Shown here piece after piece: positions 2,891 through 36,160 of a stretch of 64,000 bases of DNA (the first letter of the stretch is position 1; each line of letters starts with the position of its first letter). Position numbers and translations under genes: made by a program. The notes under the pieces were generated by a model. The model was not told where the DNA came from, did no database searches, and saw only the letters and a list, made by a program, of their open reading frames with translations. This DNA is from Lama glama (lineage: Eukaryota): assembly GCA_028534125.1 (NCBI GenBank), contig CM052818.1, positions 248,001-312,000 on the forward strand, written 5' to 3'.

Positions 2891-4308
2891 GGGGTGGGGC
2901 GGTGGTCACGCTGCCGGCAGCGAGAGGAAGGGGAGTTATGGATGGAGAGGATGGTGGAGGGACCAGGGAAAAGGGGTGATTTGGGATAGGGTCAAAGGGA
3001 AGCCAACCTACTGAGGGTTTAATTATTGTCAAAGAAGAGTGAGACATGAGAACGGTAGAGAAAGGAAGCAGATATTGAGGGTTGGGGGCTGCAGGGTATT
3101 ACAAATCGGGCAGCTGAGAAGGCCCTGAGGCTGAGGGCTCCTCTGTGAGGCCGTACCCCTGGGTCCCCAAGCCAAAATGTTCCCAGAACAAAGCTGTTCT
3201 GTTGGTTTGTTTGTCTGAGTTGGGGGAAGCATGTTGGGGGTGGGGTAGCTCACTGTAGAGGGGCTGTTCTCCGCCCCAGACAGTGGGAAGGCCTTGGCTA
3301 AGGAACTGATTGGTGCCCTGGCCTCCGGTAGCTCCGTGACAGTGATGGCGGTGTCGGCAGGAGGCTTGGACAGCCCCCCTTCCCCACTTGAAGCCCGGCC
3401 CTCCTGGGCCCCTTGACCCTACAGGGCATGTAGGGTGTGCAGCGAGCTCCCCAATGCATTCCAGTCTCTGCCTTCTTTGCCTGGAATCTACCCACAAAGG
3501 ACTCTTGGCTTAGCTCCCATTAAGGGGAACCAAGATCCGAGGGGCTCCCTGAGTCCCTCCTTGCCTGCTTCTCTCCACAATCAGTAGCTATCTTTCCCCT
3601 TACTGGCTGAATGGGGTCATCTGGGTCCCTCCTGCCTCTGCCCCCTCTCTCCTGTCAGCCCCTCTCCTCACCTATTGTCTGCCTGTCTCAGTTGCTCCCC
3701 AATTCTGTGTGCAGGCTCTCTCCTGATCCCTTTCTATCCATCTTCAAATTGTCTCTCTCTCCACTGTCTCTATGTGGTCCCTTTCATTCCCACAGTTTCC
3801 CTTCCTCTCACATCCTGTCTGTCTGGGTCTTCCTCTCCGTGCCTCTTGCTCAGTCTCTATCTCTTTATCTTAACCATTGTCTGACTCTTGGTCTCTAATC
3901 CCTGTCTTTTGATCACTGGGTCTTCTAGACTGGTGAGTGGGGATTTGGTGGTGATGATGGCAGAACTAGGGGAGGACACTGTGAGGCATAACAGCTAATA
4001 ATCTGAGTTTATTCTTTGCAAAAGGGAGGGAGAGCCTCTCTATCTCTGTCTCTGTCTCCTCTTCCCCCCTCCCTAATCTGGGTCTCTCAGGCTGTGCCTC
4101 TTTGATTCTGCATTTCTGCTCTTATTTAGTGTGTGTTTCTTTCTCACTGTGTCTCTTAGTCCCTGGGTCCCTCTCTTTTTCCTCTGGTCTTAACCACTGT
4201 CCTTTTTCCTCTTGTGACCTCTCTCTCTCTCTCTCAGACCTGGGCCTGGCTCGATTCCAGCATCCCTCACATACTCTCTCTCTCTGGGGCACCCAGCCCG
4301 TCCCTGCC

Positions 4309-7300
4309 ATGTGGCCTGTCAGTGTCTGGCAGTGGAGCCCGTGGGGGCTGCTCCTCTTCCTGCTGTACAGCTTGTGTGTGGGATCTCCATCCCCATCCAC
4401 GGCCCCCGAGAAGAAGGACGGGAGCCAGGGGCTGCGGTTCCGGCTGGCCGGCTTCCCCAGGAAGCCCTTCGAGGGCCGCGTGGAGATACAGCGAGCTGGC
4501 GAATGGGGCACCATCTGCGATGATGACTTCACGCTGCAGGCTGCCCATGTCCTGTGCCGGGAGCTGGGCTTCACCGAGGCCACAGGCTGGACCCACAGCG
4601 CCAAATATGGCCCTGGAACAGGTGAGTGATGCTCCAGGCACAGCCTAGGTATTGCCGAATCGTAGCGAGAGGGGACACCAGGATAGCACAGCCACAGGGA
4701 CACAGAACGCCAAGATCAGCCAGTGTCAAGTACACCCACGGAGGACAAACCAACCAGCAGTCACTTCTCAGAGCTGTATGAACTGAGGCTGTTCGGTGCC
4801 TTCTTCTGGACCTCAGATGCCCCACGTAGAAAATGACTAGATGATCTCTAAGTTCCTTTCTGCTGCAACAGCATGACTCCATAAAGTCACGTGTAAGGAC
4901 AGCCCTGACACAGGTGATCCCTGTATGATTAAAGTACAGCTGGTTTCATGGGCAGCTGAAAGGGGGTAAATGATGTCTGGATGTCCCAAAGCCAGAACGG
5001 ATCACAGACACTACAACCAACAAAAATCAGATTACAAGCCAGGGCTGAAACCTCAGGCTGGAACTTATGAAAGACAAGTACAAACTCTAGAACAAATATG
5101 AATGTCAGAGGAGGAAAGGTATAGCTCAGTGGTAGAGTGCATGTCTAGCATGCACAGGGTCCTGGGTTCAGTCCCCAGTACTCCTGTTTAAATAAATAAA
5201 CCTAATTACCTGCCACCCTCCCCCAAAAAACAAATATGAATGTCAGTAGCAGGGGCATGGGGCAATTCTAACTGAGATTTCAGGGTGCTTGTACTATATG
5301 AGCTCACAGTGGGACTGAAGGGCAGAAGCTGGTGCAGTCTGCAGATGATCCTCCGAACCCACTGTCTAGGCCACTTCTAGAATGAGGTTTAGATGCCAGA
5401 TTTTAAAAGAGACAGTAGAAAATGGAAAAACACTTTCAGAAGGGAGCTGCCCAGATGTGAAAGGTTGGAAATCAAGTTTCAGGGAGGAAAAGCTGGAAAA
5501 ACCAGGGATATTTGGCATGAAAAGAAAAAGCTCTGGATAACAAGTACATGATAGTTGTCTTCAAATGTGAGGACAGTCATTCGACTGAGGGATTTTTCTG
5601 CATGGCATCAAAAGACTGAATCAGACCTGGTGGGGGAAAGTCATAGAGTCACAAGGACTTTGCAATGGTTCCAGCAGCCTGGTGGGGCAGGAGTAGGTGT
5701 CCCAGCAGATGCTGGATAAGTTCTGTCAGGATGTACATGAAGGGTCCCTGCATATTGGCTGGGACCAGCATTTAAGGGGCAACATGGTGGCACAGACAGG
5801 GCAGGCGCATGGGAGAATGTGAGGCTGAGATGAAAGGATCTTAGATTTCCAAATCTCACAAATGGCTCAAACCCCTAAGACCCCATGTATTGGCTGTGTG
5901 GTCTTAGGCAAGTTATTTAACTTCTCTGAACCCCAATTTCTTTATACAAAATGGTGATAATACCTTCTGACACTTCTGTTCTAAGGATGATCATGTATGG
6001 GTAGACCCTGGCAGAGCACCTAACACACAGTAGGTACTCAATTAATTGCAGCTATCATTGAATGGGTATGGACTGATCATAACTTCAGTGTTGACTCTTG
6101 GCTTTTTATTCACCCTATCAAATTCTTGAGTATCCCCCGATCACTACCAACCCTCCCTCAATCCTTATGCTCCCTTTCCTATTCCTTCTAGGGTCCCCTG
6201 TCCCTTCTCCACCCATTATCTCACCAGAAAAAAATGGGATCATCATGGCCAGGTGTGAGGCCTCGGTACTCACGGTCACCAACATCCATATCACTTCCCT
6301 CATGCTACCTCCCCAAGCCTCTATCCCCTCATCTGCCCCCTCCACAGGCCGCATCTGGCTGGACAACCTGAGCTGCAGTGGGACTGAGCGGAGTGTGACT
6401 GAATGTGCCTCCCGGGGCTGGGGGAACAGTGACTGTACCCACGATGAGGACGCCGGGGTAATTTGCAAGGACGAGCGCCTCCCCGGCTTCTCGGATTCCA
6501 ATGTCATTGAGGTCTGTAACTCACAAACACACACACCACCCAGGGTGGTGAGACAAAGAGGGCTGTGGGGTGGTTATATGTGGTTAGATGAGATAGTAGA
6601 AGGTAGGGGGTCATCACATATGCCCAGTGGGGTCATTTGGGTTGATGGGATGCTTGCAGGGGCAAAATGATGGAGCTCCAAGACACCGTAAAGCTCAGTT
6701 CTGTTTTAGCATTAGTGTTCAAGTTGCAAGGCTTGGCATAAGCCTCTGCAACTTCATCTCTGGTCTCCAGGGCATCCTGTGCCCTCCCTCACCTCAGATG
6801 TTCCTGCTCTCCTGGAACATCTCCCTTCTTACTTTTCCCCCTGCCTTCAATGCCACTTCCTCTGTGAAGTGCTCCCTCAGGCTCCCAGGCAGAGTTAGAT
6901 GCTCCTTCCTCAGCTTCTTCAGGACCCTTAGTTATTTCTCAGAGCACAGCATGTCCTTCCACTCTCCTGACTGCAGGAGAGTTCACACACCCACACACCC
7001 CAATCAATACCTCTTAGAGGGCAGGCATGCCTCTCAGCCCCCTCTCAGCCTGGACCGCTGGCTTTACAGCAAGCATACTCAATCAGGGTTCTTTAAGGGT
7101 GGCAGGATATATGAAAGGTGCTACTGGGGATTCCTTCCTTTGCTTGTGGTCCCATCCCCAGGTAGAGCATCACCTGCAAGTGGAGGAGGTGCGACTTCGA
7201 CCAGCGGTAGGGCGGGGCAGACGGCCCCTGCCCGTGACTGAGGGACTGGTCGAAGTCAGGCTTCCAGACGGCTGGTCCCAAGTGTGTGACAAAGGCTGGA

Positions 7301-9754
7301 GTGCCCACAACAGCCACGTGGTCTGCGGGATGCTGGGCTTCCCTAACGAAAAGAGAGTCAACGTGGCCTTCTACAGGTGAAGGACACGGGCGCTGAGTGG
7401 AGCGGACTGGGGTTGAAGGGTGCTTACTAAGGAATGGGGTTGAGAGACCTCCGAGAGGATTTGGGGCACTGGGAGAACCCGGGGCTGTGGAATAGTGGGA
7501 AGATACGGAGGCCTCTGCGAAACTGGAAAGTTGAGAAACCTTGTAGGACCATGAAGAGGTCCCCGAGGCAGGTCTAACACGGGACCAGTAAAGCTCTTGT
7601 GGCCGGAGCCAGGGCGGGGCGAGCGGCGGCTGGTGGCGCGCCAGTGTCCTAGACGCCAACGATCGGCAGGCGGCGTCTCGGGCGAGCGCGGGTCCTTGCC
7701 AGGCCCCGCCCGGCCCCGCCAGACCCCGCCCAGCCCCGCCAGACCCCGCCCAGCCCCGCCAGGCCGCGCCCGGTAGCCGGCCGGCTGGAGATTGAGGTTG
7801 AGGTTGCGGCGCCGGCGCAGCCCGGGAGCCTGTGGGTTGGAGTTGGGGGAGGTCCGGGCGCGGCTGGGCTCCGGGAGTCCGACAGTGACAGGCTGGGGGC
7901 GCACGCGGGGCGGCGTGTCCCCGCCGGAGCGCCAAAACCTGAAAGGCCGGAGGGCGCCGGCAGAGGCCGCGCCCCGCCCTGGGTTCAGGCCGCCCACGAG
8001 GCGCGTTGGTGAGTGCGCGAGCCCTCAGGACTCCTAGGATACTTCGGCCCGGGCCCTCTCCACCTGCCCTGGAGCCCTGGTGTACGCGCCGGCTTCGGCT
8101 TCGGGGGAAGGAATCACACTGCTGAACGGCCCTGTGCTTACAGCGTCTTGCTTCCCTGGAGAATCTAACTTGGTCATTTTGAGAAAATCGGAAATCTCTC
8201 TGTAATCTAAACACTTATTTTCTTCAGCTCTTCCTTAAATCAGTTCCTCAGAAAGACCTCTTGACATCCGGGTAGCCTTCCACTGGGCACACTACTTCAG
8301 ATGGGTCTGATCAGGGCAGGGTACAGCGAAAACACTCATCTTTAATGACAGCATGTCTAGACTTTGCATTGCCTTTCTGTTGAGGCAGCAGCCCACTCAT
8401 GTTGACCTTGTGACCACCTAAATCCAAGTCTTTCCTCATTCTTGATGCTGATGGAGCAGCCTGTCTGAACCTAAATCTGTTGAGTTTAACCTATTAAATT
8501 AGTTTGATATATCATTTAAAAGCCACTAAAACACCATGATGATCCCATGAGATTATCTTGAATCTTGACCTCGTTTTTACATTTTGTCATCCCTCCCGGC
8601 CTCCTCTGTTCAATAGATGTGATAGCTATGCCTTCTGATCCAAAGGACTATTAAAATTTTTGAAATGTTTGGAACCAAAGTCCAACTCTTTCTATGAATC
8701 CTGCAGATTTACATCAAACCTTCAAGCATTAGTTGTGAAACTTTTTTTTCCAACCAGTTGGGAACAAACTGAACACTACAATGAGGTAGCCAAAATTTCA
8801 CCATCTTATCTATAATTATGTATAGAAATCATGGGAGCTTTTGTTAGTCTTTGCCAAAATCCAGTTACACTATGTTCACAGCCATTCTGCCACCTTCTAA
8901 TTTAGTAATCTTATCAAAAAAGGAAATCATGGTGGTATGACTGAGCTAATTTTTACTGAAATGCTTTTAGATTTCTAAGGATCACCATATTTTTTTTTCT
9001 TCGATGCTCACAAACTTTCTACTTAATAACTTATTCTAGAATTAGTAATTATCTGTAGATTGAGAAATCCTTTTCCTTCTTTTTAGAAGTCAGTATATTA
9101 TCCAACCTCTAGTCTTCTCCATACTTGCTTACATTTTCCTTGCCTTATCTGTGAGACACATGTGAAAGTTCTTTGAGTCCCAGGGAACATACTTTATCTG
9201 GTATAGAGACTCAAACGGCTTTTAAATATCTCTCTGCTCTGTTCCTTTACTGTTATCTATCTTGGGGCTATATTTCTTCCCCTGTCTATGTTCTTTACCT
9301 TTTCTAATCCAGACACCAGGTTCTGAAAGATGAGTACGATTTAAATAGAAGGCATTTCAAGTGAAAAGAGTAGCATGAACAAAAGTGTGGAGATTCACTT
9401 ATTCTCTGTTTATTTACTGAGTGCCTACTGTGTGCCAGGGATTATTGTAGACACTAGGGATTCAACAATGAACAAAGCAAACGAAAAGCCCTGTTCTCAT
9501 GGACTAGAGAAGAATCAAAATAAGTAAAATCACAAAATGTAAAGATGGCAAAGAATGTAATAGACAGAAATAAAGCAGGAAGGGGATGGGAAGTGGGGCC
9601 AGCATTACACAGGTTTAAATAGGTCAGAGGAGGCTGCTTTGAGAAGGCATCATTTGAGAAAAGATTTAAGGAGGTGAGGGGCACAAGCTTTGCAAAAACC
9701 TAGAGGAGCATTTCTAGGAAGAGGCACCAGAAATGAGAAGCCCCTGAAGAGTGT

Positions 9755-9793
<39 letters not shown>

Positions 9794-12700
9794 CAGGGCA
9801 GTGGGGTGAGGAGGTGGGGAGGGATGATTTTTATCATGCTCCAGGAGGCCGTTGGGGCTGGAGCTGAGTGAATAAGGGAAAAAATGATAGGAGATGTGAT
9901 GTAGGAGGAGACAGGAAAAGAATGGGGAGCCAGACCCTGTAGGGCCACTTGAGAGACTGGTTTTTCACTCTGTGCTAAATAAGGTTTTGAGCAGAGGTGT
10001 GACATCTGACTTCCCCTTTTTTAAAGTATTATTTGGGCTGGTTTGTTAAGAATAGCTTCAAGGGATGCCATATAATCAAGGAGGCAGGGAGATAGTGAGG
10101 AGGTTACTGTCTCCTGAAGGCCAAGTAAAGAAAGTGACAGGTGATGGTGACCAGTGAAAGTGGTGAAAAATGATCCAATTCTGTGTCAAAGGTAGAGTTA
10201 AAGGTAGCGTCAACAGGACTTGCTGATGGATTCAGTGTGGTGTGATGGAAGAAGAGGAATTAAGGATCATTCCAAGGGTTTTGGCCCGAGCTAGGTACAG
10301 AGGTGGCTTCATTTGATAAGGAAGACAGTAAGTGGGGAGGGTGTAGCTCAAGTGGTAGGTTGCATGCTTAGCATGCACAAGGTCCTGGGTTCAATCCCTA
10401 CTACCTATTCCAAAAATTAATAAACCTAATTACCTCCCCTCACCAAAAAAAAAAAAGAAGAATAAGATGAAAAAGATAAGGAAGACAATGTGTGGGGATG
10501 GGAGAGTGGGGGTTAAATTTGAGGTACTTTACGACATTGAAATGGTGAGGCTGAGTAGGCAGTTGGGTATATGACTCTAGAATTCAATTGAATACAAGTA
10601 TTTAAAGCTCAGAAACTGGACAACATCACCAACGGAGTGAGTGTAAATAGGAAAAAAGAGGTCCAGGCACTGGACCTTGGGGAGCTTAAATATTATGAGG
10701 TCAGGAAGATAAGGCAAAATGCAAGCAGTGAGGTGAAGTAGAAAGAAGAGTGTGGCGGCCTGGAAGCCAAGTAAAGTGCTTCATGGAGGAGAGGGCTGAC
10801 CTGAGTCAGCACCGCTGATCGGTCTAAACATATGAGGACTGAAAAACCAGCACTGGATGTAGCAACATGGAAGTCATTTTTGACCCCGACAGAGATGAAA
10901 ATGGATATATTTGAAAGACAGGTGACTAGAGTAGGTTTGTGCTGAGGAATAATGGAAGATCTGAATGGATAAAGTAAGGCTACAAAATGGGACAGTTTTA
11001 ATGCCAGATTGGAGAGTTTTACCTTTATTTTGTGGAAAATTTTAAAAATCAAAATATTTGTATGGGACAGTGATAAAATAAGGCCAGCGTTTTCTAAAGT
11101 TTTCCTGATGGTAGTGAATTAGAAGAGGTGCTTGATGCAGTGAGACTACTTAGGAGTTATCAAAATGAAGCCGATTAGGAGGGTGACAACAAGGAGAGAG
11201 GGAAATGAAGAGATGCAGGATGACTGATGGAATACAGGAAATAAGAGAAGCGATAACTCAAATGATTCTGAAGGGAGAGGGGAGGATGGTGCCCATCAAG
11301 CATCTCTGGACTTCAAGTTCATACAAATTAACTTTAGAATTGGGCCATCCCTGGGAATTCTGAGACCCAGGAATTGTCCCTAAGTATGCACAGCTTTGAG
11401 TAATTTTCAGGAATCAGGAACATTTGTGTACATACTGGAATCTCTTACTGAGTCTGGGATATGAAGGCTGGAGAAGGGGATAAACTAAATCCACAGGTCA
11501 TTCTTAGTGGGGAAGGAGATTACAGGAGTCCTGGGAGATTCTGTGATGAGGAATGACATAGAGACTCTTTCACAGGTCAGGTCAGACAGGGAGAATCCTC
11601 ACAGCTAATACAATGATAAAGGCTAGGCAAGATCGTTAAAAAAAAAAACAGCTCCATATGCCTTAGAGAAAGAAGACGCGTGTGCTAGCTTTTAGAGAAG
11701 TTGATAGGATTTGGGGAATAAGGAAATCGGAATATGATATATTTACCATTTTTAAATTTGGTTTGGTGGTTCCACCCTAGAATATGTGAAAGTTGTAGAA
11801 TTTTACAAGAGGAAAAGAATGTGTAGATAATTGAACCATTTACTGCCCTTTTGCTGGCAAAGAAATTGGGGTTTGAGGAGCTTAAGGGCTGTTTAAGAGG
11901 TCACTCTTCTAGTTCATTTCCGTTTGACAGATATTTATTGAACTCCTACTATTTGCCAAGCACTGTGCAAGGTGCTGAGAATACAGAGGTGATGAGAGAG
12001 GTAATTAGGCACCAGATCATAGAAGACCTTATAGGCTATGGTAAGGATTTAGATCTTTATGATACAAGAAATTGGAAATCATTGAGGTGTTTTTATGAGA
12101 GGACATGACCAGGCTTGTAGCTCCAAGAGATCACTTTGTCTGCATTTCTGATAATGGTTTAGAGGAGAGCAAGAGTGAATGGATTAGACAGACCTTTAGG
12201 AAGTAACACTGACAGGACTTGGTTATGGATTGACTTTGGGAGCCAAAGAAGAGAGAAGTGTTAAGGTTGACTCCTTGGTTTCTGGAGTAGATTTTGCTGA
12301 ATTATGAGGTTTTTTTTTTTTTTGGACCCACATTACATTTTAGATAACTTTAAGATATCTAAGTAGAAACATCAAGAAGCAATGGAATATACAAGGTTAG
12401 TTGTGAATGAAAACATATAGAGAGGCTATGGAATGAGAAGAGAAGAAAGCCTCAGACAGCGCTCCCAAAATTTAAATGACTAGACAGAGGAGGAGCCTGC
12501 AAAGAAGACCAAGAAAGAACAACCAGAATTAGAAATCAAACCAGGCTTGTAGGGTTGTGACAGCCCAGGAGGGAGAGAGAGAGAACAGGAGTGTCAGATG
12601 CCACCAAGAATCAATAGGATGAGGTGGGGAGGGTATAGCTCAAGTGGTAGAGCACATGCTTAGCATGCATGAGGTCCTGGGTTCAATTCCCAGTCCCTCC

Positions 12701-15700
12701 TCCAAAAATAAATAAACCTAATTACCTCCCCTCCCCCACCAAAAAAGTTAATAATGCAATAATACATACATAAAATATTTTTAAAAATAAAAAAATATGA
12801 AGTCAAAAGGAGAATGAGAGGAGAAACAGACCCAGGTTCCATACATTAGACTTAAGGCAACCTCTTGAGGAATAAAATAAGTCAAATATTAAGGCCAATT
12901 AAAAATAAATAAGGCTTAGAATTTATTTCCCCGGAAGTAAGTTGGGGAGATGAGCTCAGCTTAGAATGACTAAAGCATATGGGGTTTAACTTAGGCAAGA
13001 AGGGTGCTGTCATCCTGGGCAGGCTGGCCTCATGCTCCCCAGCCAGGCCAAGTTAGCGTCCCTTGGTCCTGGTTCCCTGGCCCCAGGCCTGGACATGCCA
13101 GAAGCCGGAGAACATCCAAGAGAAAAAGACACAGTCAGCCTCCCTGGGCGTTACCAGGCCAGTTCTCTTTCCTCGCCTGGTCGGTCTGGTGATCCCAACA
13201 CCCTTCTGCTACGCCCTTCCCCCTGCCCTCCCCTCGGGTTTAGATCAGCCCTTATTCCCCATCTGCCTTGGCCTGATTTCTGTGGGTCCTGATATAGTGT
13301 CTTTATCGGTCTGAGGCCACGTTCTTCACTGCTGCTCACCCGGCTGGCCGTGTGCTTATAAGGCCAAACAGCTGTGCAGGGTGGAGCCTTGGGTGGATCT
13401 CGTGTCATCCTGCCACAAGGAACCCTTCTGACCGTTTGAAAAGAAATCTTGCCCCTGGTCCCAGTGGCACCAGTTCCTTCCACTTGGTTCTAGACTGACC
13501 CTGTCTCTGCTATTGTCTTATCCTCACAGAAAGTTGAGGAAGCGAGCGGCCAAAACCTCGGCCCGACGCTCCAAGCCCCTTGGAAGGTAATGGGGCAAGA
13601 GCCCCGGGACCTCCTGCTCACCACGGTGGCCCCAGGAGGTGGATGGATGGATGGAAGGCAGCCTATCCATGTCCATCCCAGAACCCAAGCCCATGAATTA
13701 GGGCTACGACTGGGAAATGGCCATTCCAGCGGGGAGGGGAGGGGAGGCAGGCATGGGGATGGGTAAGCTTTGATCTTAGGAAGCACAAGGAGGAAATAAT
13801 GTCGGAATGTCTGAGGAGGAGCCCCTGCATCTTTATACTTCCCCCAGATAGCTTGGACTCCAGCCTCAGCCACCTGCATGCTTCCTCCTTCGCCCGCCTA
13901 CTCCTGACCTCCCTTAATTCACCTACGTTCCCATTCTTTCTCCTCCCACTACTATTTCTCTATCTCGTTTCCCCTCATCACCTGGATTGACATACTAGAC
14001 TTCTCATCACTGTTGCTAAATCCAGAGAGCGGCACAAGTTCCCAAAATACACTCAAGTGCTATGCAGCATCAGTGTCTGTGGACACCCTGACCACCTTCG
14101 CTTTACCGCTTCCCATGCTCTGCATGAAGGGGCCTTCCTAGAAACAGAGAAAAAGAAAGAAAGAACCCCCTACCTTTCCTGGTAGTGTAACTGACCGCTG
14201 CCTCCACTAACTTCTTTCTCCTTTTTCCAGACAAGTCACCAAGCTTAAAGTCAAACCCAAACCCCGAGTGGGCAGGGGGCCAGTCAAGAGGTAAACAAAG
14301 TTCAGGCTGGGTGGAGAGGAGAGGGGTGCCAAGTGGTGAGTCGGGGGCATCGGGCTGTGGTGAGGAAGGGGTCCAGAGAGGCCTCTGCCAAGAGGTGGGG
14401 GAGCAGCAGCAAGGATTACAAGCCACCTTCCAGATGGTTCCCTGAAATGTAAAGTAAAGCTGGCCCTCATGTCGTTCTCTGAGGAGTTAAGCTTGTCACG
14501 GGAATTTTTGAAATCTCAACAGAAGCTCATCCACTGACTGCCCTTGTTCCATGTGCTTATTTATCTTTCCGCAGTGGATTTTAGCAGGTACTCTGGCCCT
14601 TTGGTCTTTCACATGCCATGCTTGCCTCTCCCCTAAGAAGTCACGTTTGCCTAAGGGACCAGTGTTCCCATCCTACATTTATTTGATTAATTTTTTTTTA
14701 AATAAGTGCTACCGACTTGGAAGTAAGACTCGGGATCCCCTCTGGAACCTTTACCAGGGATGGAGTCAGATGACAGTCCTGTCTCTCTGGCCCAGTTTCC
14801 ACAATGAGGCTCCCAGTTCCATAATTTTCCTCCTGGGTTCCTTCAGAGCCCCAGGGAGTGGAAAGCTTCCAGTCCCAGTGATTACGTCTCACTTGGCTTC
14901 CAAAGGCAGTTTGAACATGAAAATCTCCCTGATAGCTTCTTTAGCCGTGGCTGAGATGTAGAGAACCCATCCCTTTCTCTTGTCTCCTCCTCCCTGCAGA
15001 GCATCCCAGGATCACTCAGTGGTCCCTCCTCCAGTACCCCTCATTCCCCAGCTCCTCCTTCTGTGGCTTCAGAGGGGCTTGGAATTTGGGGGTATTCTTG
15101 TCCTGCCCTTCTAGCTTAGGGTCGTGTTGTCCAACATGGCCATACTCTGGCCTTCCCTAACCCCTAAACTAAAGTTCACAGTGTCGTTTTTACTTTGTTA
15201 GCTGGGGGGAAGGGCTTTGTTAGTTGCAGGGAAGGGGAGGAGGGAGTTTAGAAGACAGATGCCTTTTTCCTATGATGGCCTCTTTGATTTTATTTTCAGG
15301 CAGACAGGGCTTTGGGAGACAACCTGGGCTCTTTGAGCTTCAGAATCCACTTATTGTGAGCTTCTAAAGGTATTCTGTAAAGTCTCCAGGCTTCCTTTGT
15401 CTGTTTTGTTGATAACCTTTCCATCTCTCTGTGTCTTACCAGCCAATGACTTCAAATTGTCATATTCCCTCCTTCCTCTGACATTAAGTCGTGGAGCACG
15501 TTACTGCAATAGCTCACCACCTAACCAGCCTCCCAGGCCAACTCTGCCAACACCAGGCCTCCTCTGGTTCCTTCCCAGCTGTTCTGGGAAGAAAGTGCTT
15601 CTCTCATTCCAGGCTTCACTGCAGTATCTCATTCTGTTGGTGTCGATAAACAAGTCCCCTCGTTCTTCCTAGCGTCTCTCTGCAGTGTTTCCAGGTCTTA

Positions 15701-18700
15701 AAACCTCTAGTTTAGTCCCGTTTTCCTGCTCCATGGCTACAGAACATTCTCTCTGTTACGTTTGAGTTGCAGAAGCGTGGACTACTTCATTAAAGATGCA
15801 TACAGTTCAGCTCAGGTCTGGGGCTACGTCTACCCTTCTGTGTTCATATTCGCTCTCCTTCTCCGCTCATGTGGGCCCTGTAACTTTTGGCTGTCTTGCA
15901 TTTATACATTTTAATCCCTCCATACGCCATCTCCAGACTTTCCTGTGTCCACCACCCGGTCTGTTCTTCACGTAACTGCCCAGCATCCTCTGGCCTCTAG
16001 GAAGCCACGTAGACCCAGACTTACTCCTTTGCATCCGGACTCATTCAGTCATTTCAGTCTCAGTGTAACAGAAGGATCTGCTCGCTCTGGCTACTTAGGC
16101 TTCCTGTTTGTGTCAGCTGCTCCTTCCTGCCTGTCTCCTCCAGCTGGGCAGCCCTGGCTTCCTTTTCTTTTTACACAGCAGCCTCAGCCTCCATTAGGGC
16201 CAGCATCCTGAAACCATATGGGACAAGGTTTTGTCTGGCAAGTCAAGACCCATAGGGTTCTTCTGCTGCACAAGGTCCCCAGCAAATCCCACCCACCCCC
16301 ATCCCCGCTGTCCGGTTAACCTAGGCTCTTTCAGCCTAGAACTACTCACCGTTACCTTTGTCTCTTTGCAGAGAAGAGGGGAAGAAGCCCAATGTGGCCA
16401 CGAAGGGTCAGGGGTGGTGGAGGGATGGAGTGGGAGGAGGGATGTGGGCGAAGAGGCAGGAGCATTGTTTTACCGTACTGCACCCTACTCCTGTCCCCCC
16501 AGGCTGCTGGCCCAGCGGCAGCAACACTCCTTTGGTCTGCATGGGGTGGACTGCGTGGGCACGGAAGCCCACCTCTCCCTCTGCTCCTTGGAGTTCTATC
16601 GTGCCAATGACACCGCCAGGTGCCCTGGGGGGTCCCCTGCGGTGGTGAGCTGTGTGCCAAGCCCTCTCTATGCAGCAGCGTCCAGTGGCCAGAAGAAGCA
16701 ACAGTCGAAGCCTCAGGGGGAGGTGTGTGAGACAGTGACTCTGACCTTCCCCATCCCAGGTGGAGAACCCCCTAGCCTGGCCACACCCTGTCTAAGCACA
16801 GCCCTGACCTTTGAGGACAGAGAGGAGCCTTCCAGGGGGTGGGCCACAGACCTGAGACTGCCCCCTCCCTCCCAGCAGAATCTCATTTATCTCCCAGGTC
16901 TGTTAGCCCTCTCTGTGCTGAGGTCCCCATTCACGGCTGGTGGGTACCTCTCTCTCCTCTACAGGCCCGAGTGCGTCTAAAGGGCGGAGCCCACCCAGGA
17001 GAGGGCCGGGTAGAAGTCCTGAAGGCTGGCACGTGGGGTACAGTCTGTGACCGCAAGTGGGACCTGCAGGCAGCCAGCGTGGTGTGTCGGGAGCTGGGCT
17101 TCGGGAGCGCCCGAGAGGCGCTGAGTGGTGCCCGCATGGGGCAGGGTAAGGGGTGCAGGTGGGAGGGGGAAGGAGGAGGTACACACTTCCGGTGGGTACA
17201 TTCCTTGGGAAGGAGACCCCTGGGCAGACAACGAAGGTCTAGCTACAACCTCCTGGTCTTTGACCTGTGACCTTAGGCATGGGTGCCATCCACTTGAGTG
17301 AAGTTCGATGCTCTGGACAGGAACCCTCCCTCTGGAACTGCCCCCACAAGAACATCACAGCTGAGGACTGTTCCCATAGCCGGGATGCTGGAGTCCGATG
17401 TAACCTGCCCTACACTGGGGTAGAGACCAAGGTCAGTCCCTCTTTGCACCTTGGTTCAGGTGTTTCACGTCCTATCCAGTCTTGGTCATGATCCACCAGT
17501 CTGATGGCCCTGCTGCCCACTGCCCCACTATCCAGTAGCTCTCACCTGATGCCACCACTTGCTGGCCCTTTAAGTGCCTCAGGCTCGCTGTTCAGCCCAG
17601 GTCTGCTGCAGGCTCCCTCCACTCCACCCCAAAAGCTTTCCNNNNNNNNNNNNNNNNNNNNNNNNNNNNNNNNNNNNNNNNNNNNNNNNNNNNNNNNNNN
17701 NNNNNNNNNNNNNNNNNNNNNNNNNNNNNNNNNNNNNNNNNNNNNNNNNNNNNNNNNNNNNNNNNNNNNNNNNNNNNNNNNNNNNNNNNNNNNNNNNNNN
17801 NNNNNNNNNNNNNTATGCCAGCCATGGCCTGCAGGTGAGTGCGCAGGAGAGGGGAACCAAGGCCCTTGCCTCCCAGGGCTGTTTGGGGCAGAGGACTGTG
17901 GAAATGAGTCCCTTGGTCCGGGAGGCTAATGGGGGGACCTCACATAAACACCTTGATATGTCCCCAGGAGACCTGGTACTGGGACTCAGGGAATATAACA
18001 GAGGTGGTGATGAGTGGAGTGCGCTGCGCAGGGACTGAGCTGTCCCTGGACCAGTGTGCTCATCATGGCACCCACGTCACCTGCAAGAGGACAGGAACCC
18101 GCTTCACTGCTGGAGTCATTTGTTCTGAGAGTGAGTGAAGGGCGGGGTGACGCAAGCCTGGGAAGGGAGGCCCTGGGCCACCCTTTTGCAGGGAAAGAGG
18201 GCTGTCATCTGCAGGGGTATGCCTTCCAGGTGGAAAACCAGAGCTCTGCGGGAGGGGGGTGCAGCGGTCCTGTCTGGCCCCGCCCCTCAGCTGTAACTAA
18301 CACTCTCCGTTCTTTCTGGGGTGCAGCCGCGTCAGACCTGCTGCTGCACTCAGCGCTGGTGCAGGAGACGGCCTACATCGAGGACCGGCCCCTGCACATG
18401 CTGTACTGCGCTGCCGAGGAGAACTGCCTGGCCAGCTCGGCCCGCTCAGCCAACTGGCCTTACGGCCACCGGCGTCTGCTCCGATTCTCCTCCCAGATCC
18501 ACAACCTGGGACGTGCTGACTTCAGGCCCAAGGCGGGGCGCCACTCCTGGGTGTGGCATGAGTGTCATGGGTGAGAGGGGCGAGTAGAAGGGCAAGGCCA
18601 CCGGGGTTAGGGCAGGCTTGCGGGGGGGCAGGGAAGGAAACAGGGGTTCCTTTATCCCCACAGGCATTACCACAGCATGGACATCTTCACTCACTACGAT

Positions 18701-19447
18701 ATCCTGACCCCCAACGGCACCAAGGTGGCTGAGGGCCACAAAGCTAGTTTCTGTCTAGAAGACACAGAGTGTCAGGAGGGTGAGTTGGGGCTTAGACGAC
18801 AGTATCCCCATCCCGCAGACTTGCCTCACACTGACATATGCTGATCTCTTCAGATGTCTCCAAGAGGTATGAGTGTGCCAACTTTGGAGAGCAGGGCATC
18901 ACCGTGGGTTGCTGGGATCTCTACCGGCATGACATTGACTGTCAGTGGATTGACATCACAGATGTGAAGCCAGGAAACTACATTCTACAGGTGCCTGGGG
19001 TCTGAGATTTCCAGCTGTCAAGTGGGAGGAGCTTTTATTAAAGCACCTTTGATCTGATTTGAAGGCTGCAGCTGGCTGACTTCCTTCCACTCACAGGTGG
19101 TCATCAACCCTAACTTTGAAGTGGCAGAGAGTGACTTCACCAACAACGCAATGAAATGTAACTGCAAATATGATGGACATCGCATCTGGGTGCACAACTG
19201 TCACATTGGTATTTGGTGGGAAGAGTAGCCAGAAAGACTGGGGGATGGGAGGGAGAAGAATGAATTCTCTGCTCCCTAAGTTGTTCCTCTGGATCTCCCA
19301 GTCTCTCCACTTCTACCTGCCCTTCCCCACAGTGGGTCTGTTTTCCTGCCCAAACCACCCGTTCACCTTGCAGGTGATGCCTTCAGTGAAGAGGCCAACC
19401 AGAGGTTTGAACGCTACCCTGGCCAGACCAGCAACCAGATCATCTAA
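4309..19447 (+). CDS. LOXL3: Lysyl oxidase-like 3 (signal peptide, 4 SRCR domains, LOX catalytic domain)
   Basis: Exons 4309-4621, 6348-6511, 7162-7376, 16503-16722, 16965-17145, 17277-17431, (gap)-17834, 17968-18130, 18327-18570, 18664-18779, 18854-18990, 19097-19208, 19374-19447 (TAA). SRCR motifs EGRVE..WGT[IV]CD; copper-binding WVWHECHG|HYHS; LTQ-region [10 protein letters not shown] and [16 protein letters not shown]. Confidence 0.97.
5109..5228 (+). mobile_element. tRNA-Ala(AGC)-derived SINE (camelid Vic-1-like)
   Basis: GGTATAGCTCAGTGGTAGAG (A box)...GGGTTCAGTCCC (B box), A-rich tail, 18-bp TSD AACAAATATGAATGTCAG at 5091-5108 and 5229-5246. Confidence 0.9.
5885..6060 (+). mobile_element. 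MIR SINE fragment
   Basis: GGCTGTGTGGTCTTAGGCAAGTTATTTAACTTCTCTGAACCCCAATTTC...AAAATGGTGATAATA resembles the MIR core. Confidence 0.75.
7590..8110. promoter_or_regulatory. Intragenic CpG island in the LOXL3 intron with a 10-bp-periodic GC-box array; candidate upstream promoter of DOK1
   Basis: CpG-dense; six CCCCGCC boxes at 7704, 7714, 7724, 7734, 7744, 7754; perfect 20-bp tandem duplicate at 7721-7760. Confidence 0.7.
9756..9791. repeat. (GT)18 microsatellite
   Basis: Uninterrupted GT run. Confidence 0.95.
10334..10474 (+). mobile_element. tRNA-Ala-derived SINE (Vic-1-like)
   Basis: GGGGAGGGTGTAGCTCAAGTGGTAG...CTTAGCATGCACAAGGTCCTGGGTTCAATCCC, poly-A tail, flanking direct repeat GATAAGGAAGACA. 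Confidence 0.88.
12626..12790 (+). mobile_element. tRNA-Ala-derived SINE (Vic-1-like)
   Basis: GGGGAGGGTATAGCTCAAGTGGTAGAGCACATGCTTAGCATGCATGAGGTCCTGGGTTCAATTCCC plus the family tail AATAAACCTAATTACCTCCCC. Confidence 0.88.
13087..13134 (+). pseudogene. Candidate decayed LOXL3 cassette exon A (basic peptide [16 protein letters not shown])
   Basis: Acceptor CCCTGGCCCCAG|. Reading in phase 2 is open and very basic. The frame-preserving end (13134) is followed by TCAGC rather than GT, and the available GT gives a 47-nt exon. Confidence 0.35.
13530..13586 (+). CDS. LOXL3: Alternative in-frame LOXL3 cassette exon B (57 nt; [19 protein letters not shown])
   Basis: Branch-like CTGAC at 13495, pyrimidine tract and TCCTCACAG| acceptor, AAG|GTAATG donor, phase 2/2 matching the host intron, no stop. 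Confidence 0.75.
14231..14290 (+). CDS. LOXL3: Alternative in-frame LOXL3 cassette exon C (60 nt; [20 protein letters not shown])
   Basis: Consensus-like branch point CACTAAC at 14205-14211, pure pyrimidine tract TTCTTTCTCCTTTTTCCAG|, GAG|GTAAAC donor, phase 2/2, no stop. Confidence 0.72.
16372..16413 (+). CDS. Candidate LOXL3 cassette exon D (42 nt; [14 protein letters not shown]), weak donor
   Basis: Strong acceptor (CTCAC branch-like, CTTTGTCTCTTTGCAG|). The in-frame donor GG|GTGGTG is weak, and an alternative GT at 16407 is out of frame. Confidence 0.35.
17642..17813. other. Assembly gap hiding most of a LOXL3 SRCR4 exon
   Basis: 172 N. Sequence resumes as TATGCCAGCCATGGCCTGCAG|GTGAGT (YASHGLQ, exon end). 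Confidence 0.95.
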
Positions 19448-19898
19448 GGTGCCACCACCCTCCTCTGCACACCACCACTGGCCCCCAGTGGCAGGGGTCT
19501 GAGGCTGCCATTACCTCAGGAGCTTACCAAGGAAGAATCCCTGACGTCAGCAGGCCCACAGCACTCATCCAGTGTGCGCTGTGGGTGTGGAACTGTCAAG
19601 CGGAAGTGATCGCCCTTCTTAGGCCAGCTGTCCGGATCTATGGCCACACAGGGGGCACTTTTGCTCCCAGGCCCAGCACCAAGCCAAGTACGCCACAAAG
19701 AGGAGCACCTGATTAACTGCCCAGAACAAAAGACAGCCAGCAGCTCGTTTTCTTCAAGAGGGAGGTCAGAATGGTCAACTCCAGTATCTCCCCTCAGTTC
19801 AAGGAGATACAGCTTTACCTCTAACCTTTTAGTGGGGGGACAGAGCAGTGTGCTACCCTCCCCCTCATTTTTGAGTATAACATGTTGCTAGGTATAAT

Positions 19899-34734: not shown

Positions 34735-36160
34735 TCANNNNNNNNNNNNNNNNNNNNNNNNNNNNNNNNNNNNNNNNNNNNNNNNNNNNNNNNNNNNNNN
34801 NNNNNNNNNNNNNNNNNNNNNNNNNNNNNNNNNNNNNNNNNNNNNNNNNNNNNNNNNNNNNNNNNNNNNGCGGCGGCCGCAGCGGTCGCGGTAGCGCGTC
34901 CTGCTGCAGGTGCAGAAGCAGCCGGCCCGCGCGGTGCCGCTCCGCCTCGCGCTCCTCGGCCGTCTGGCGCCTGGGCGGGCGGAGACGCGGGGTCAGCGAG
35001 GCCGGCCCTCGCCCGCCCCGCGCCGCGCCTCACCGCCACTTGGCCCGGCCCGGTCCCTCGCCCACCCCGCGCCTCACCGCCACTTGGTGCGCCGGTTCTG
35101 GAACCACGTCTTGACCTGCGCGTCAGTCATGCGCAGGGCCTTGGCCAGCGCCGCCCTCTCGGCCGAGGCCAGGTACTTCTGGCGCAGGAAGCGCCGCTCC
35201 AGCTCCAGCACCTGCGAGCGGGAGAAAGACGTGCGCGGCTTCTTCCGCTTCGGGGGCGTCCGGTTTTGGTAGGGGTGACCTATACGGCGCGTCCCGGAGA
35301 AGGGCGAGAGCGCGGCTACAGGGAGGAAGAAAGCAAGACAGGGTTTTCGGGGCGGCCCGAGGTGTCACTGAGACGAGAGCATGGCTGCGCAGGCCGCAGA
35401 GCTCCCGCACCGCGTCCCTACCCCTGCCCCAAGCTCGGCCCCCCGAATCAGTAGAGGCTTCCAGATGAGAAAGGGCCTCGGAAACGCCCCCCACCTTGGG
35501 TGAGGGAGAGACGTCCCGGTAACTTCACCCTGCCCTCCCGGCGGTGTGGACAGCGGACTGCAGAGGAGGGCGCGGGTGTCGACGGCAGCTACCTCCCCAG
35601 CGCCTCTCAGCAGTGGGACCAAGAGATACAAGTTGAGGGAAGATCCCCTGGGATGAGGAGCGGAGGGTATGAAAGGGGACCTTGAGTTGGAGCAGAAGGA
35701 TCAAAGATGAGGAAACCGGGTCAGTGTGGGCAGGATGCTGGAGGGATTGGGCAACCTTACCCGTGAGCCGGTCCTTGGCATAGCGGCGGCCGCTGTCCAT
35801 CCAAGGAAAGGTGAGTCCCGCTAGGCCCCCGGCGCCGCCCAAGCCTGAGGGCCCAGGAACCGCAGGCGCGCCTCCCGCGGGCGGCTGCACTGGCAGCGGG
35901 CGGTGCGCTGGGACGCGGATCACGCCTCCCGGGCCCACACCAGAGCTGCCTGGTAGCGGGGTCAGCGAGCCCGCGGGGCCGTAGCTCGAGGCTCCGTGAA
36001 ATCCACCCGAGAACGCCGCACTCTCCCCATGGCCCTGGCCGGCGCGACCCAGGCCTAGGCCGCTCCCGGGGGGTTCCGGGCAGCTCAGGATCTGATCGAT
36101 GCCGAAGCTGATTGGCTCGTGGTGAGGGAGGTTGTGCGATGCCAGCACCGCCGGCTCCAT
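34735..36160 (-). CDS. TLX2: T-cell leukemia homeobox 2 (HOX11L1/NCX)
   Basis: Exons 36160-35761, 35315-35078, 34970-(gap)-34735 (TGA). eh1 FGIDQIL, PBX-interaction FPWM, homeodomain [57 protein letters not shown]. Confidence 0.96.
34738..34869. other. Assembly gap in the TLX2 last exon
   Basis: Run of N between GC-rich flanks. Confidence 0.95.

Follow-up and report, generated by a model that had tools for sequence, protein, structure and literature searches.

Exons 6 and 7 of VEGF-A are basic exons that serve to retain a secreted protein on the matrix. A comparable role is described for the basic alternative exon 6 of PDGF-A (69 bp), which acts as a matrix-retention motif (PMC2289277, PMC3072383). 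Exons of this kind govern how these growth factors attach to heparan sulfate and the matrix, and they have persisted for hundreds of millions of years (for PDGF-A: PMC2289277, PMC3072383). Here we describe two probable exons of a similar kind, termed B and C, in the LOXL3 gene of Lama glama, within a stretch of 64,000 nucleotides (nt) (GenBank assembly GCA_028534125.1, contig CM052818.1, positions 248,001 to 312,000 of the forward strand; hereafter the window, numbered from its first letter). Like the PDGF-A and VEGF-A exons, B and C are short, frame-preserving, alternative in a secreted protein and rich in lysine and arginine (K/R). While the PDGF-A and VEGF-A exons form C-terminal tails, the LOXL3 insert would be a loop in a folded SRCR domain of an enzyme, and its binding activity is putative. 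Based on comparison with orthologous proteins, B and C are very probably genuine, conserved coding alternative exons.

LOXL3 is a collagen cross-linking enzyme that is needed for development of the palate, spine, muscle-tendon junction, eye and ear, and it is studied in fibrosis and cancer. To our knowledge, work on LOXL3 uses the canonical 753-residue form and two exon-skipping variants. Of these variants, LOXL3-sv1 lacks exons 1-3 and 5, and LOXL3-sv2 lacks exons 4 and 5 (PMC12619944). Like B and C, both arise where transcripts of this gene are processed differently near exons 4 and 5 (PMC12619944); while sv1 and sv2 are exon losses, B and C are extra exons included from intron 4 that leave all domains of the protein in place. 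Searches of the literature for a LOXL3 cassette, for exon inclusion and for heparin together with SRCR returned no paper on B or C, in agreement with a preliminary description of this DNA, made from its letters alone, which knew of no functional account of them.

That description had placed a cluster of four polybasic cassette exons, segments A to D, inside a 9.1-kb phase-2 intron that splits the SRCR2 domain of LOXL3 at ..NVAFYR/LLAQRQQ... We could read both borders of this intron, which is 9126 nt long and indeed in phase 2. Exon 4 ends in ..NVAFY plus the AG of a split arginine codon (donor CAG/gtgaag), and the first codons of exon 5 are G CTG CTG, giving ..R LLAQRQQ... The features of the host intron and of the two exons are the following:

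7162-7376, forward strand: LOXL3 exon 4, coding for the first half of SRCR2; in translation it agrees with LOXL3 orthologues.
7377-16502, forward strand: LOXL3 intron 4, phase 2, 9126 nt, host of the alternative exons.
13494-13529, forward strand: B-long, 36 nt that an upstream acceptor (AG at 13492-13493) can add to the 5' end of exon B.
13530-13586, forward strand: cassette exon B, 57 nt, 19 codons including the split arginine; borders cag/A..AAG/gtaatg.
14231-14290, forward strand: cassette exon C, 60 nt, 20 codons including the split arginine; borders ttccag/A..GAG/gtaaac.
16503-16722, forward strand: LOXL3 exon 5, second half of SRCR2 and linker; begins cag/G CTG CTG and ends GAG/gtgtgt.

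Exons B and C have canonical AG and GT borders, and the good splice sites and lengths first attributed to them were borne out. Both the acceptor and the donor of C are strong, the acceptor having a long, strong pyrimidine tract and branch-point candidates CTAAC at -24 and CTGAC at -40. In a splice-site scan of the intron, C was the only segment to pass both thresholds on sequence alone while keeping the frame; this crude scan was home-made from consensus frequencies, serves for ranking only and under-scores the acceptor of B. Exon B encodes about nine K/R residues and exon C eight, and neither encodes aspartate or glutamate (D/E). Additionally, exon B keeps five CpG dinucleotides in its 57 nt, an observed-to-expected ratio (o/e) of 0.93, compared with 0.3-0.4 in the intron around it. 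The B-long extension is also open in phase 2 and would add 12 mostly hydrophobic residues, yielding an exon of 93 nt without a stop codon.

To determine whether LOXL3 proteins of other species carry residues at this junction, comparisons were made exon by exon or with public orthologue proteins. Searching 50%-identity representatives with exon 2 mostly returned multi-SRCR proteins and was used only to find a seed, the LOXL3 protein P0043 (labelled Pan troglodytes); a search restricted to the region of exons 4 and 5, together with three cluster listings, then gave about 150 LOXL3 proteins, in which any residues separating the conserved motifs ..FY(R/K) and L(L/Y).. were taken as the insert. One member of this set, P0151, is unlabelled; it is derived from a transcript, shares 99% identity with P0043, may come from an ape or human, and entered only the bulk junction scan. 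About 45 of the predicted isoforms carry an insert exactly at the ..AFYR/LLAQ.. junction. In placentals the B insert is always 19 residues long and near-identical, its first 11 residues hardly varying; at one of the 19 positions the window departs from the cetartiodactyl form. The C insert is always 20 residues long in placentals and marsupials, and is annotated in bats, cetaceans, ruminants, mustelids, dog, elephants, elephant shrew and marsupials. A local tblastn search, which like the motif count given below covered the sequence outside 13510-13554, placed the Mustela C peptide at 14232-14291 with 85% identity and aligned a marsupial C peptide with 74% identity.

In annotation, the two exons are included separately or together. 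B alone is found in Pteropus, Manis, Cricetulus and Canis X3; C alone in Glossophaga, Rhinolophus, Pseudorca and Loxodonta; and B followed by C in Artibeus, Mustela, Ovis, Cervus, Globicephala, Canis X1, Elephas, Rousettus, Rhynchocyon and Apodemus. Both exons, with the same lengths, also occur in the marsupials Sminthopsis, Notamacropus, Monodelphis, Sarcophilus and Phascolarctos. Forms that skip both exons are annotated as well, often within the same species as inclusion forms, which supports the earlier statement that canonical LOXL3 skips these segments and shows B and C as frame-preserving alternative cassettes. Different forms within one species are annotated for Artibeus (X1/X3/X4), Mustela (X1/X3), Cervus (X2/X5), Hemicordylus (X1-X5) and Anolis (X1/X2), and the predicted isoform sets of Canis and Sminthopsis likewise hold inclusion and skipping forms. 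The 12-residue B-long extension is annotated in dog X1 and X3 (P0215, P0216) and in Phyllostomus X5 (P0229), and corresponds to the open upstream acceptor of the window at 13494.

As the preliminary description had suspected, B and C already appear in predicted isoforms, among them Artibeus X1, Mustela X1, Elephas X1, Canis X1/X3, Ovis X3 and Monodelphis X1. The X1 isoforms of Artibeus jamaicensis (P0162), Mustela putorius furo (P0205), Elephas maximus (P0220), Canis lupus (P0215) and Monodelphis (P0292) share with the window the two exons, the junction and the lengths of 19 and 20 residues, and their peptides are near-identical to those of the window; they are computational models only, with no functional study attached. 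The two exons are annotated, as unlabelled 'isoform X' predictions only, but not studied.

Outside mammals, basic inserts are found at the same LOXL3 junction. The cordylid lizard Hemicordylus has a B-like insert of 20-21 residues followed by a C-like insert of about 20 residues, and a parrot protein (P0298) has a B-like and then a C-like insert, the same order as in mammals. A B-like insert is present in the agamid Phrynocephalus, and a C-like insert in Anolis and in a cuckoo (P0174). Four shark isoforms (P0190-P0192, P0303) carry an 18-residue B-like insert. The core shared by exons of the B type is a multibasic run ending in K/R-R and followed by A-A or A-S. A frog LOXL3 has a 17-residue, less basic insert whose relation to B or C is uncertain. 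Judged by comparison at the protein level, conservation of B and C spans the amniotes, with a B-like exon also in sharks.

To examine where the inserted residues would lie in the protein, the Mustela isoform carrying B and C was modelled with AlphaFold2 from a 101-sequence alignment. The SRCR domains were resolved at a predicted local distance difference test score (pLDDT) of 70-85. The insert (residues 232-270) lies between SRCR2 helix alpha1 (207-216) and the strand at 280-286; residues 239-276 fall below a pLDDT of 50, with a low-confidence helix at 227-240 over the start of B. The low scores of the insert are compatible with a flexible surface loop. Across therians, B and C together contribute 14-17 K/R and 0-3 D/E in about 40 residues. 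In the window the pair would put up to 39 residues (19 from B and 20 from C) with a net charge of about +17 and no acidic residue into SRCR2. The Cardin-Weintraub pattern XBBBXXBX occurs in every therian B and is absent from most of the non-mammalian inserts.

Taken together, these findings are probably best explained by B and C being real, independently included LOXL3 cassettes that place a basic insert in SRCR2. In this explanation, B, with its optional acceptor at 13494, and C would each be included on their own while keeping the phase-2 frame, adding 19 and 20 residues, respectively, between helix alpha1 and the following SRCR2 beta-strand. The spliced-in basic loop would then serve as an electrostatic tether, holding the secreted enzyme on sulfated glycosaminoglycans, the matrix or cell surfaces, and the multibasic run with which B begins (..K/R-R, then A-A), itself conserved, may double as a proprotein-convertase site. 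Retention of the polybasic loop on sulfated matrix, which is read from composition and motifs, seems to us the likeliest role, though as a tentative proposal it falls somewhat short of an even chance.

Several points weigh against this explanation. Inclusion of the exons in this animal is inferred from conserved splice sites and from orthologues, and the orthologue evidence consists entirely of predicted proteins; in some pipelines, cross-species protein alignment could spread an exon between annotations once frame and splice sites are conserved. The conservation was seen at the level of proteins, and among placentals the non-coding intron nearby shows fair conservation too. That the sauropsid and shark inserts are homologous to B and C is argued from their position, length and order and from a short motif rather than from a significant alignment. 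As a whole, the AlphaFold2 model is poor (mean pLDDT 59, predicted template modelling score 0.30) and gives weak evidence for a disordered loop. Exon C contains no canonical heparin-binding consensus (XBBXBX or XBBBXXBX), and binding, cleavage and localisation of the insert are all predicted from sequence.

In one rival explanation, B and C are conserved for non-coding reasons, as intronic regulatory or splicing elements, or are low-level splicing noise propagated by annotation, with no functional protein isoform. The supporting proteins are all predictions, conservation extends over the 3' third of the intron in general, and published LOXL3 work knows only sv1 and sv2. Yet the exact lengths of 57 and 60 nt, the open frames and the K/R content, with few or no acidic residues, are retained across placentals and marsupials, while neighbouring conserved intron segments lose the frame; basic inserts stand at the same junction in sauropsids and sharks; and the insert-bearing models come from several independent pipelines (RefSeq XP_, Ensembl/UniProt, and GenBank KAM, ELK and MEJ entries). 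We regard a non-coding or noise origin as improbable. Another explanation is the original proposal that all four segments act as one modular switch. All four are open in phase 2 with the peptides first given for them, are K/R-rich and have lengths (48, 57, 60 and 42 nt for A, B, C and D) that are multiples of three. The two segments other than B and C are:

13087-13134, forward strand: segment A, an open K/R-rich stretch with no GT donor, judged a chance open reading frame.
16372-16413, forward strand: segment D, with an acceptable acceptor and a weak donor (GGG/gtggtg), judged a chance pseudo-exon.

The 3' end of A is followed by TC rather than GT, and if the nearest GT served as donor, the exon would measure 47 nt and shift the frame; the donor of D has a crude score of 1.4, compared with 6.3-7.6 for B, C and exon 4. 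Neither segment was seen in any of the approximately 150 LOXL3 proteins. Open basic segments are also frequent by chance: the intron holds 28 polybasic, AG-led, phase-2-open sites, compared with 12.5 +/- 5.0 (maximum 29) in first-order Markov simulations, so composition alone proves nothing, and B and C stand above the chance level because the same peptides recur at the same junction in many species. A, together with the RSRR motif within it, and D were accordingly rejected as contributing exons, for want of an adequate donor and of any orthologue isoform; they are judged chance open stretches and, on the present evidence, not exons. The claim of cassette exons is thus supported for B and C, through their orthologue inserts, but not for A (with its RSRR) and D, reducing the four-exon cluster to a pair, together with the alternative upstream acceptor of B at 13494, and leaving a four-exon switch barely credible.

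Two further explanations accept the exons and differ in what the insert would do. Exon B might mainly add a furin/PACE4-type convertase site to SRCR2, so that splicing would decide whether LOXL3 is clipped. The precedent is LOXL2, which, as the preliminary description stated, is processed at a basic site after SRCR2: PACE4 cleaves it at RFRK/A in the linker between SRCR2 and SRCR3 (PMC8699698). Both sites combine a multibasic motif with a following alanine. The LOXL2 site stands in an exposed segment near SRCR2, namely the linker and not the interior of the domain; it is constitutive, and its cleavage has been shown experimentally. In shark, squamate and parrot the B-like exons carry a perfect R-X-K/R-R (RFRR/RRRR, RSKR, RFKR, RVKR) followed by A-A or A-S, and the low model confidence of the segment fits an exposed loop. 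In contrast, R-X-K/R-R was found in no placental or marsupial B; therian B lacks the arginine at P4, retaining only K-R before A-A, with arginines at P3 and P6. Furthermore, a cut inside SRCR2 would free no fragment if the disulfides of the domain bridge the site, and exon C would be left unexplained. From these sequence arguments, a convertase site as the main purpose of B appears unlikely. Less likely still is that the cassette is a nuclear localisation signal (NLS) that would account for the nuclear pool of LOXL3. According to a 2025 review, nuclear LOXL3 exists but its NLS has not been identified (PMC12619944), and B with the split arginine reads by eye as a loose bipartite NLS, with two basic residues, a 10-residue spacer and three basic residues in five. 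No strict monopartite K-K/R-X-K/R core was read in the cassette, however. Full-length LOXL3 has a signal peptide, encoded in exon 2, and is secreted, the insert would sit inside a disulfide-bonded domain of extracellular type, and no isoform examined ties the cassette specifically to N-terminally truncated forms lacking the signal peptide.

We next compared the junction in the paralogues. The preliminary description had stated a basic insert at this SRCR2 position in LOXL4, and a 13-residue segment that starts with K-L/Q-W and ends with P-K-x-R is indeed present at the same junction. Annotations vary as to this segment too, which is present in 58 and absent from 37 cluster representatives, sometimes with differences within a species or genus. 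In the LOXL4 proteins P0304-P0422, the cassette is missing from primate and bird Ensembl models and present in frog, shark and sturgeon models. The LOXL4 cassette resembles the LOXL3 exons in intron position, in phase and in its presence or absence between isoforms; unlike B and C, it is a single 39-nt exon of only mild basicity that most annotated forms include. It is too weakly similar in sequence to LOXL3 B for homology to be proved. No insert was seen at the SRCR2 junction in the few LOXL2 sequences examined. The LOXL4 cassette and the LOXL3 exons may descend from the same ancestral cassette. A fuller scenario, in which one SRCR2-intron cassette predating the LOXL3/LOXL4 duplication gave rise to both the two-exon polybasic module of LOXL3 and the 13-residue cassette of LOXL4, with tissue-specific splicing setting the site of action of the enzyme, is speculative and in our estimate doubtful.

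In this scenario, splicing of the module would determine whether LOXL3 is retained on heparan sulfate or matrix or diffusible, clipped or intact, or nuclear or secreted. Cross-linking of collagen, elastin and fibronectin would then be under a form of control not recognised so far, and the module could be the source of the missing NLS of nuclear LOXL3. The exons raise three testable hypotheses, about matrix localisation, LOXL2-like proteolytic processing and nuclear access of a fraction of LOXL3. They also bear on variant interpretation, as deep-intronic variants of intron 4 could strike coding sequence.

The intron around B and C contains recognisable homologues of exons that are annotated in other lineages:

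15305-15370, forward strand: homologue of a deer-specific extra exon, 64% identity by tblastn, with an in-frame stop.
16257-16298, forward strand: homologue of a cetacean-specific extra exon, 71% identity by tblastn, requiring a one-residue gap.

The deer exon is carried by isoforms P0159 and P0209 and the cetacean exon by P0201 and P0203, and both represent lineage-specific exonisation in LOXL3 intron 4. As their homologues in the window are recognisable but closed by a stop or out of register, the 3' part of the intron is conserved generally, and only B and C keep length and frame. With regard to possible regulators, the 644-nt intron between B and C contains TGCATG (RBFOX-type) motifs at 13875 and 14121. 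These are two of the four TGCATG motifs in the 9.1-kb intron, a mild enrichment only, and we regard them as a possible lead to tissue-specific regulation rather than a finding.

The frame of exon 5 is open upstream into the intron as far as 16231 (16231-16502). A porpoise isoform of 615 residues (P0199) has an alternative first exon whose end resembles the window at about 16240-16300. Together, the isoform and the open frame hint at an N-terminally truncated LOXL3 without a signal peptide in some species.

Transcript data were sampled over 13000-16700. In RNA runs, between 0.08 and 0.39 of the sampled words of this region were present, shares from which nothing is concluded. RNA sequencing contigs filed as 'reproductive system metagenome' contained 17-26% of the sampled words of the region, which is mostly intronic; this share exceeds what exon 5, B and C could supply. 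Pre-mRNA, an intronic transcript or DNA carry-over are possible sources of the excess.

Along the intron, GC content is 0.32-0.47 in 8277-13076 and 0.48-0.63 from 13077 onward, where CpG o/e is 0.2-0.47. The composition from 13077 onward is compatible with a 3' third free of short interspersed nuclear elements. In the window, LOXL3 (forward strand, about 4300-19500) is accompanied by DOK1 and HTRA2 (both reverse strand), AUP1 and DQX1. Runs of N occupy 17642-17813 (172 bases, within the LOXL3 span) and 34738-34869 (132 bases). Directly 3' of exon 4, at 7377-8277 in the intron, there is a CpG island with a GC content of 0.56-0.79 and a CpG o/e of 0.74-0.85, beyond which CpG o/e drops to 0.1-0.2. 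The island contains a short direct repeat, with an identical 12-residue peptide translated at 7707 and 7727, and may be an internal promoter or regulatory element.

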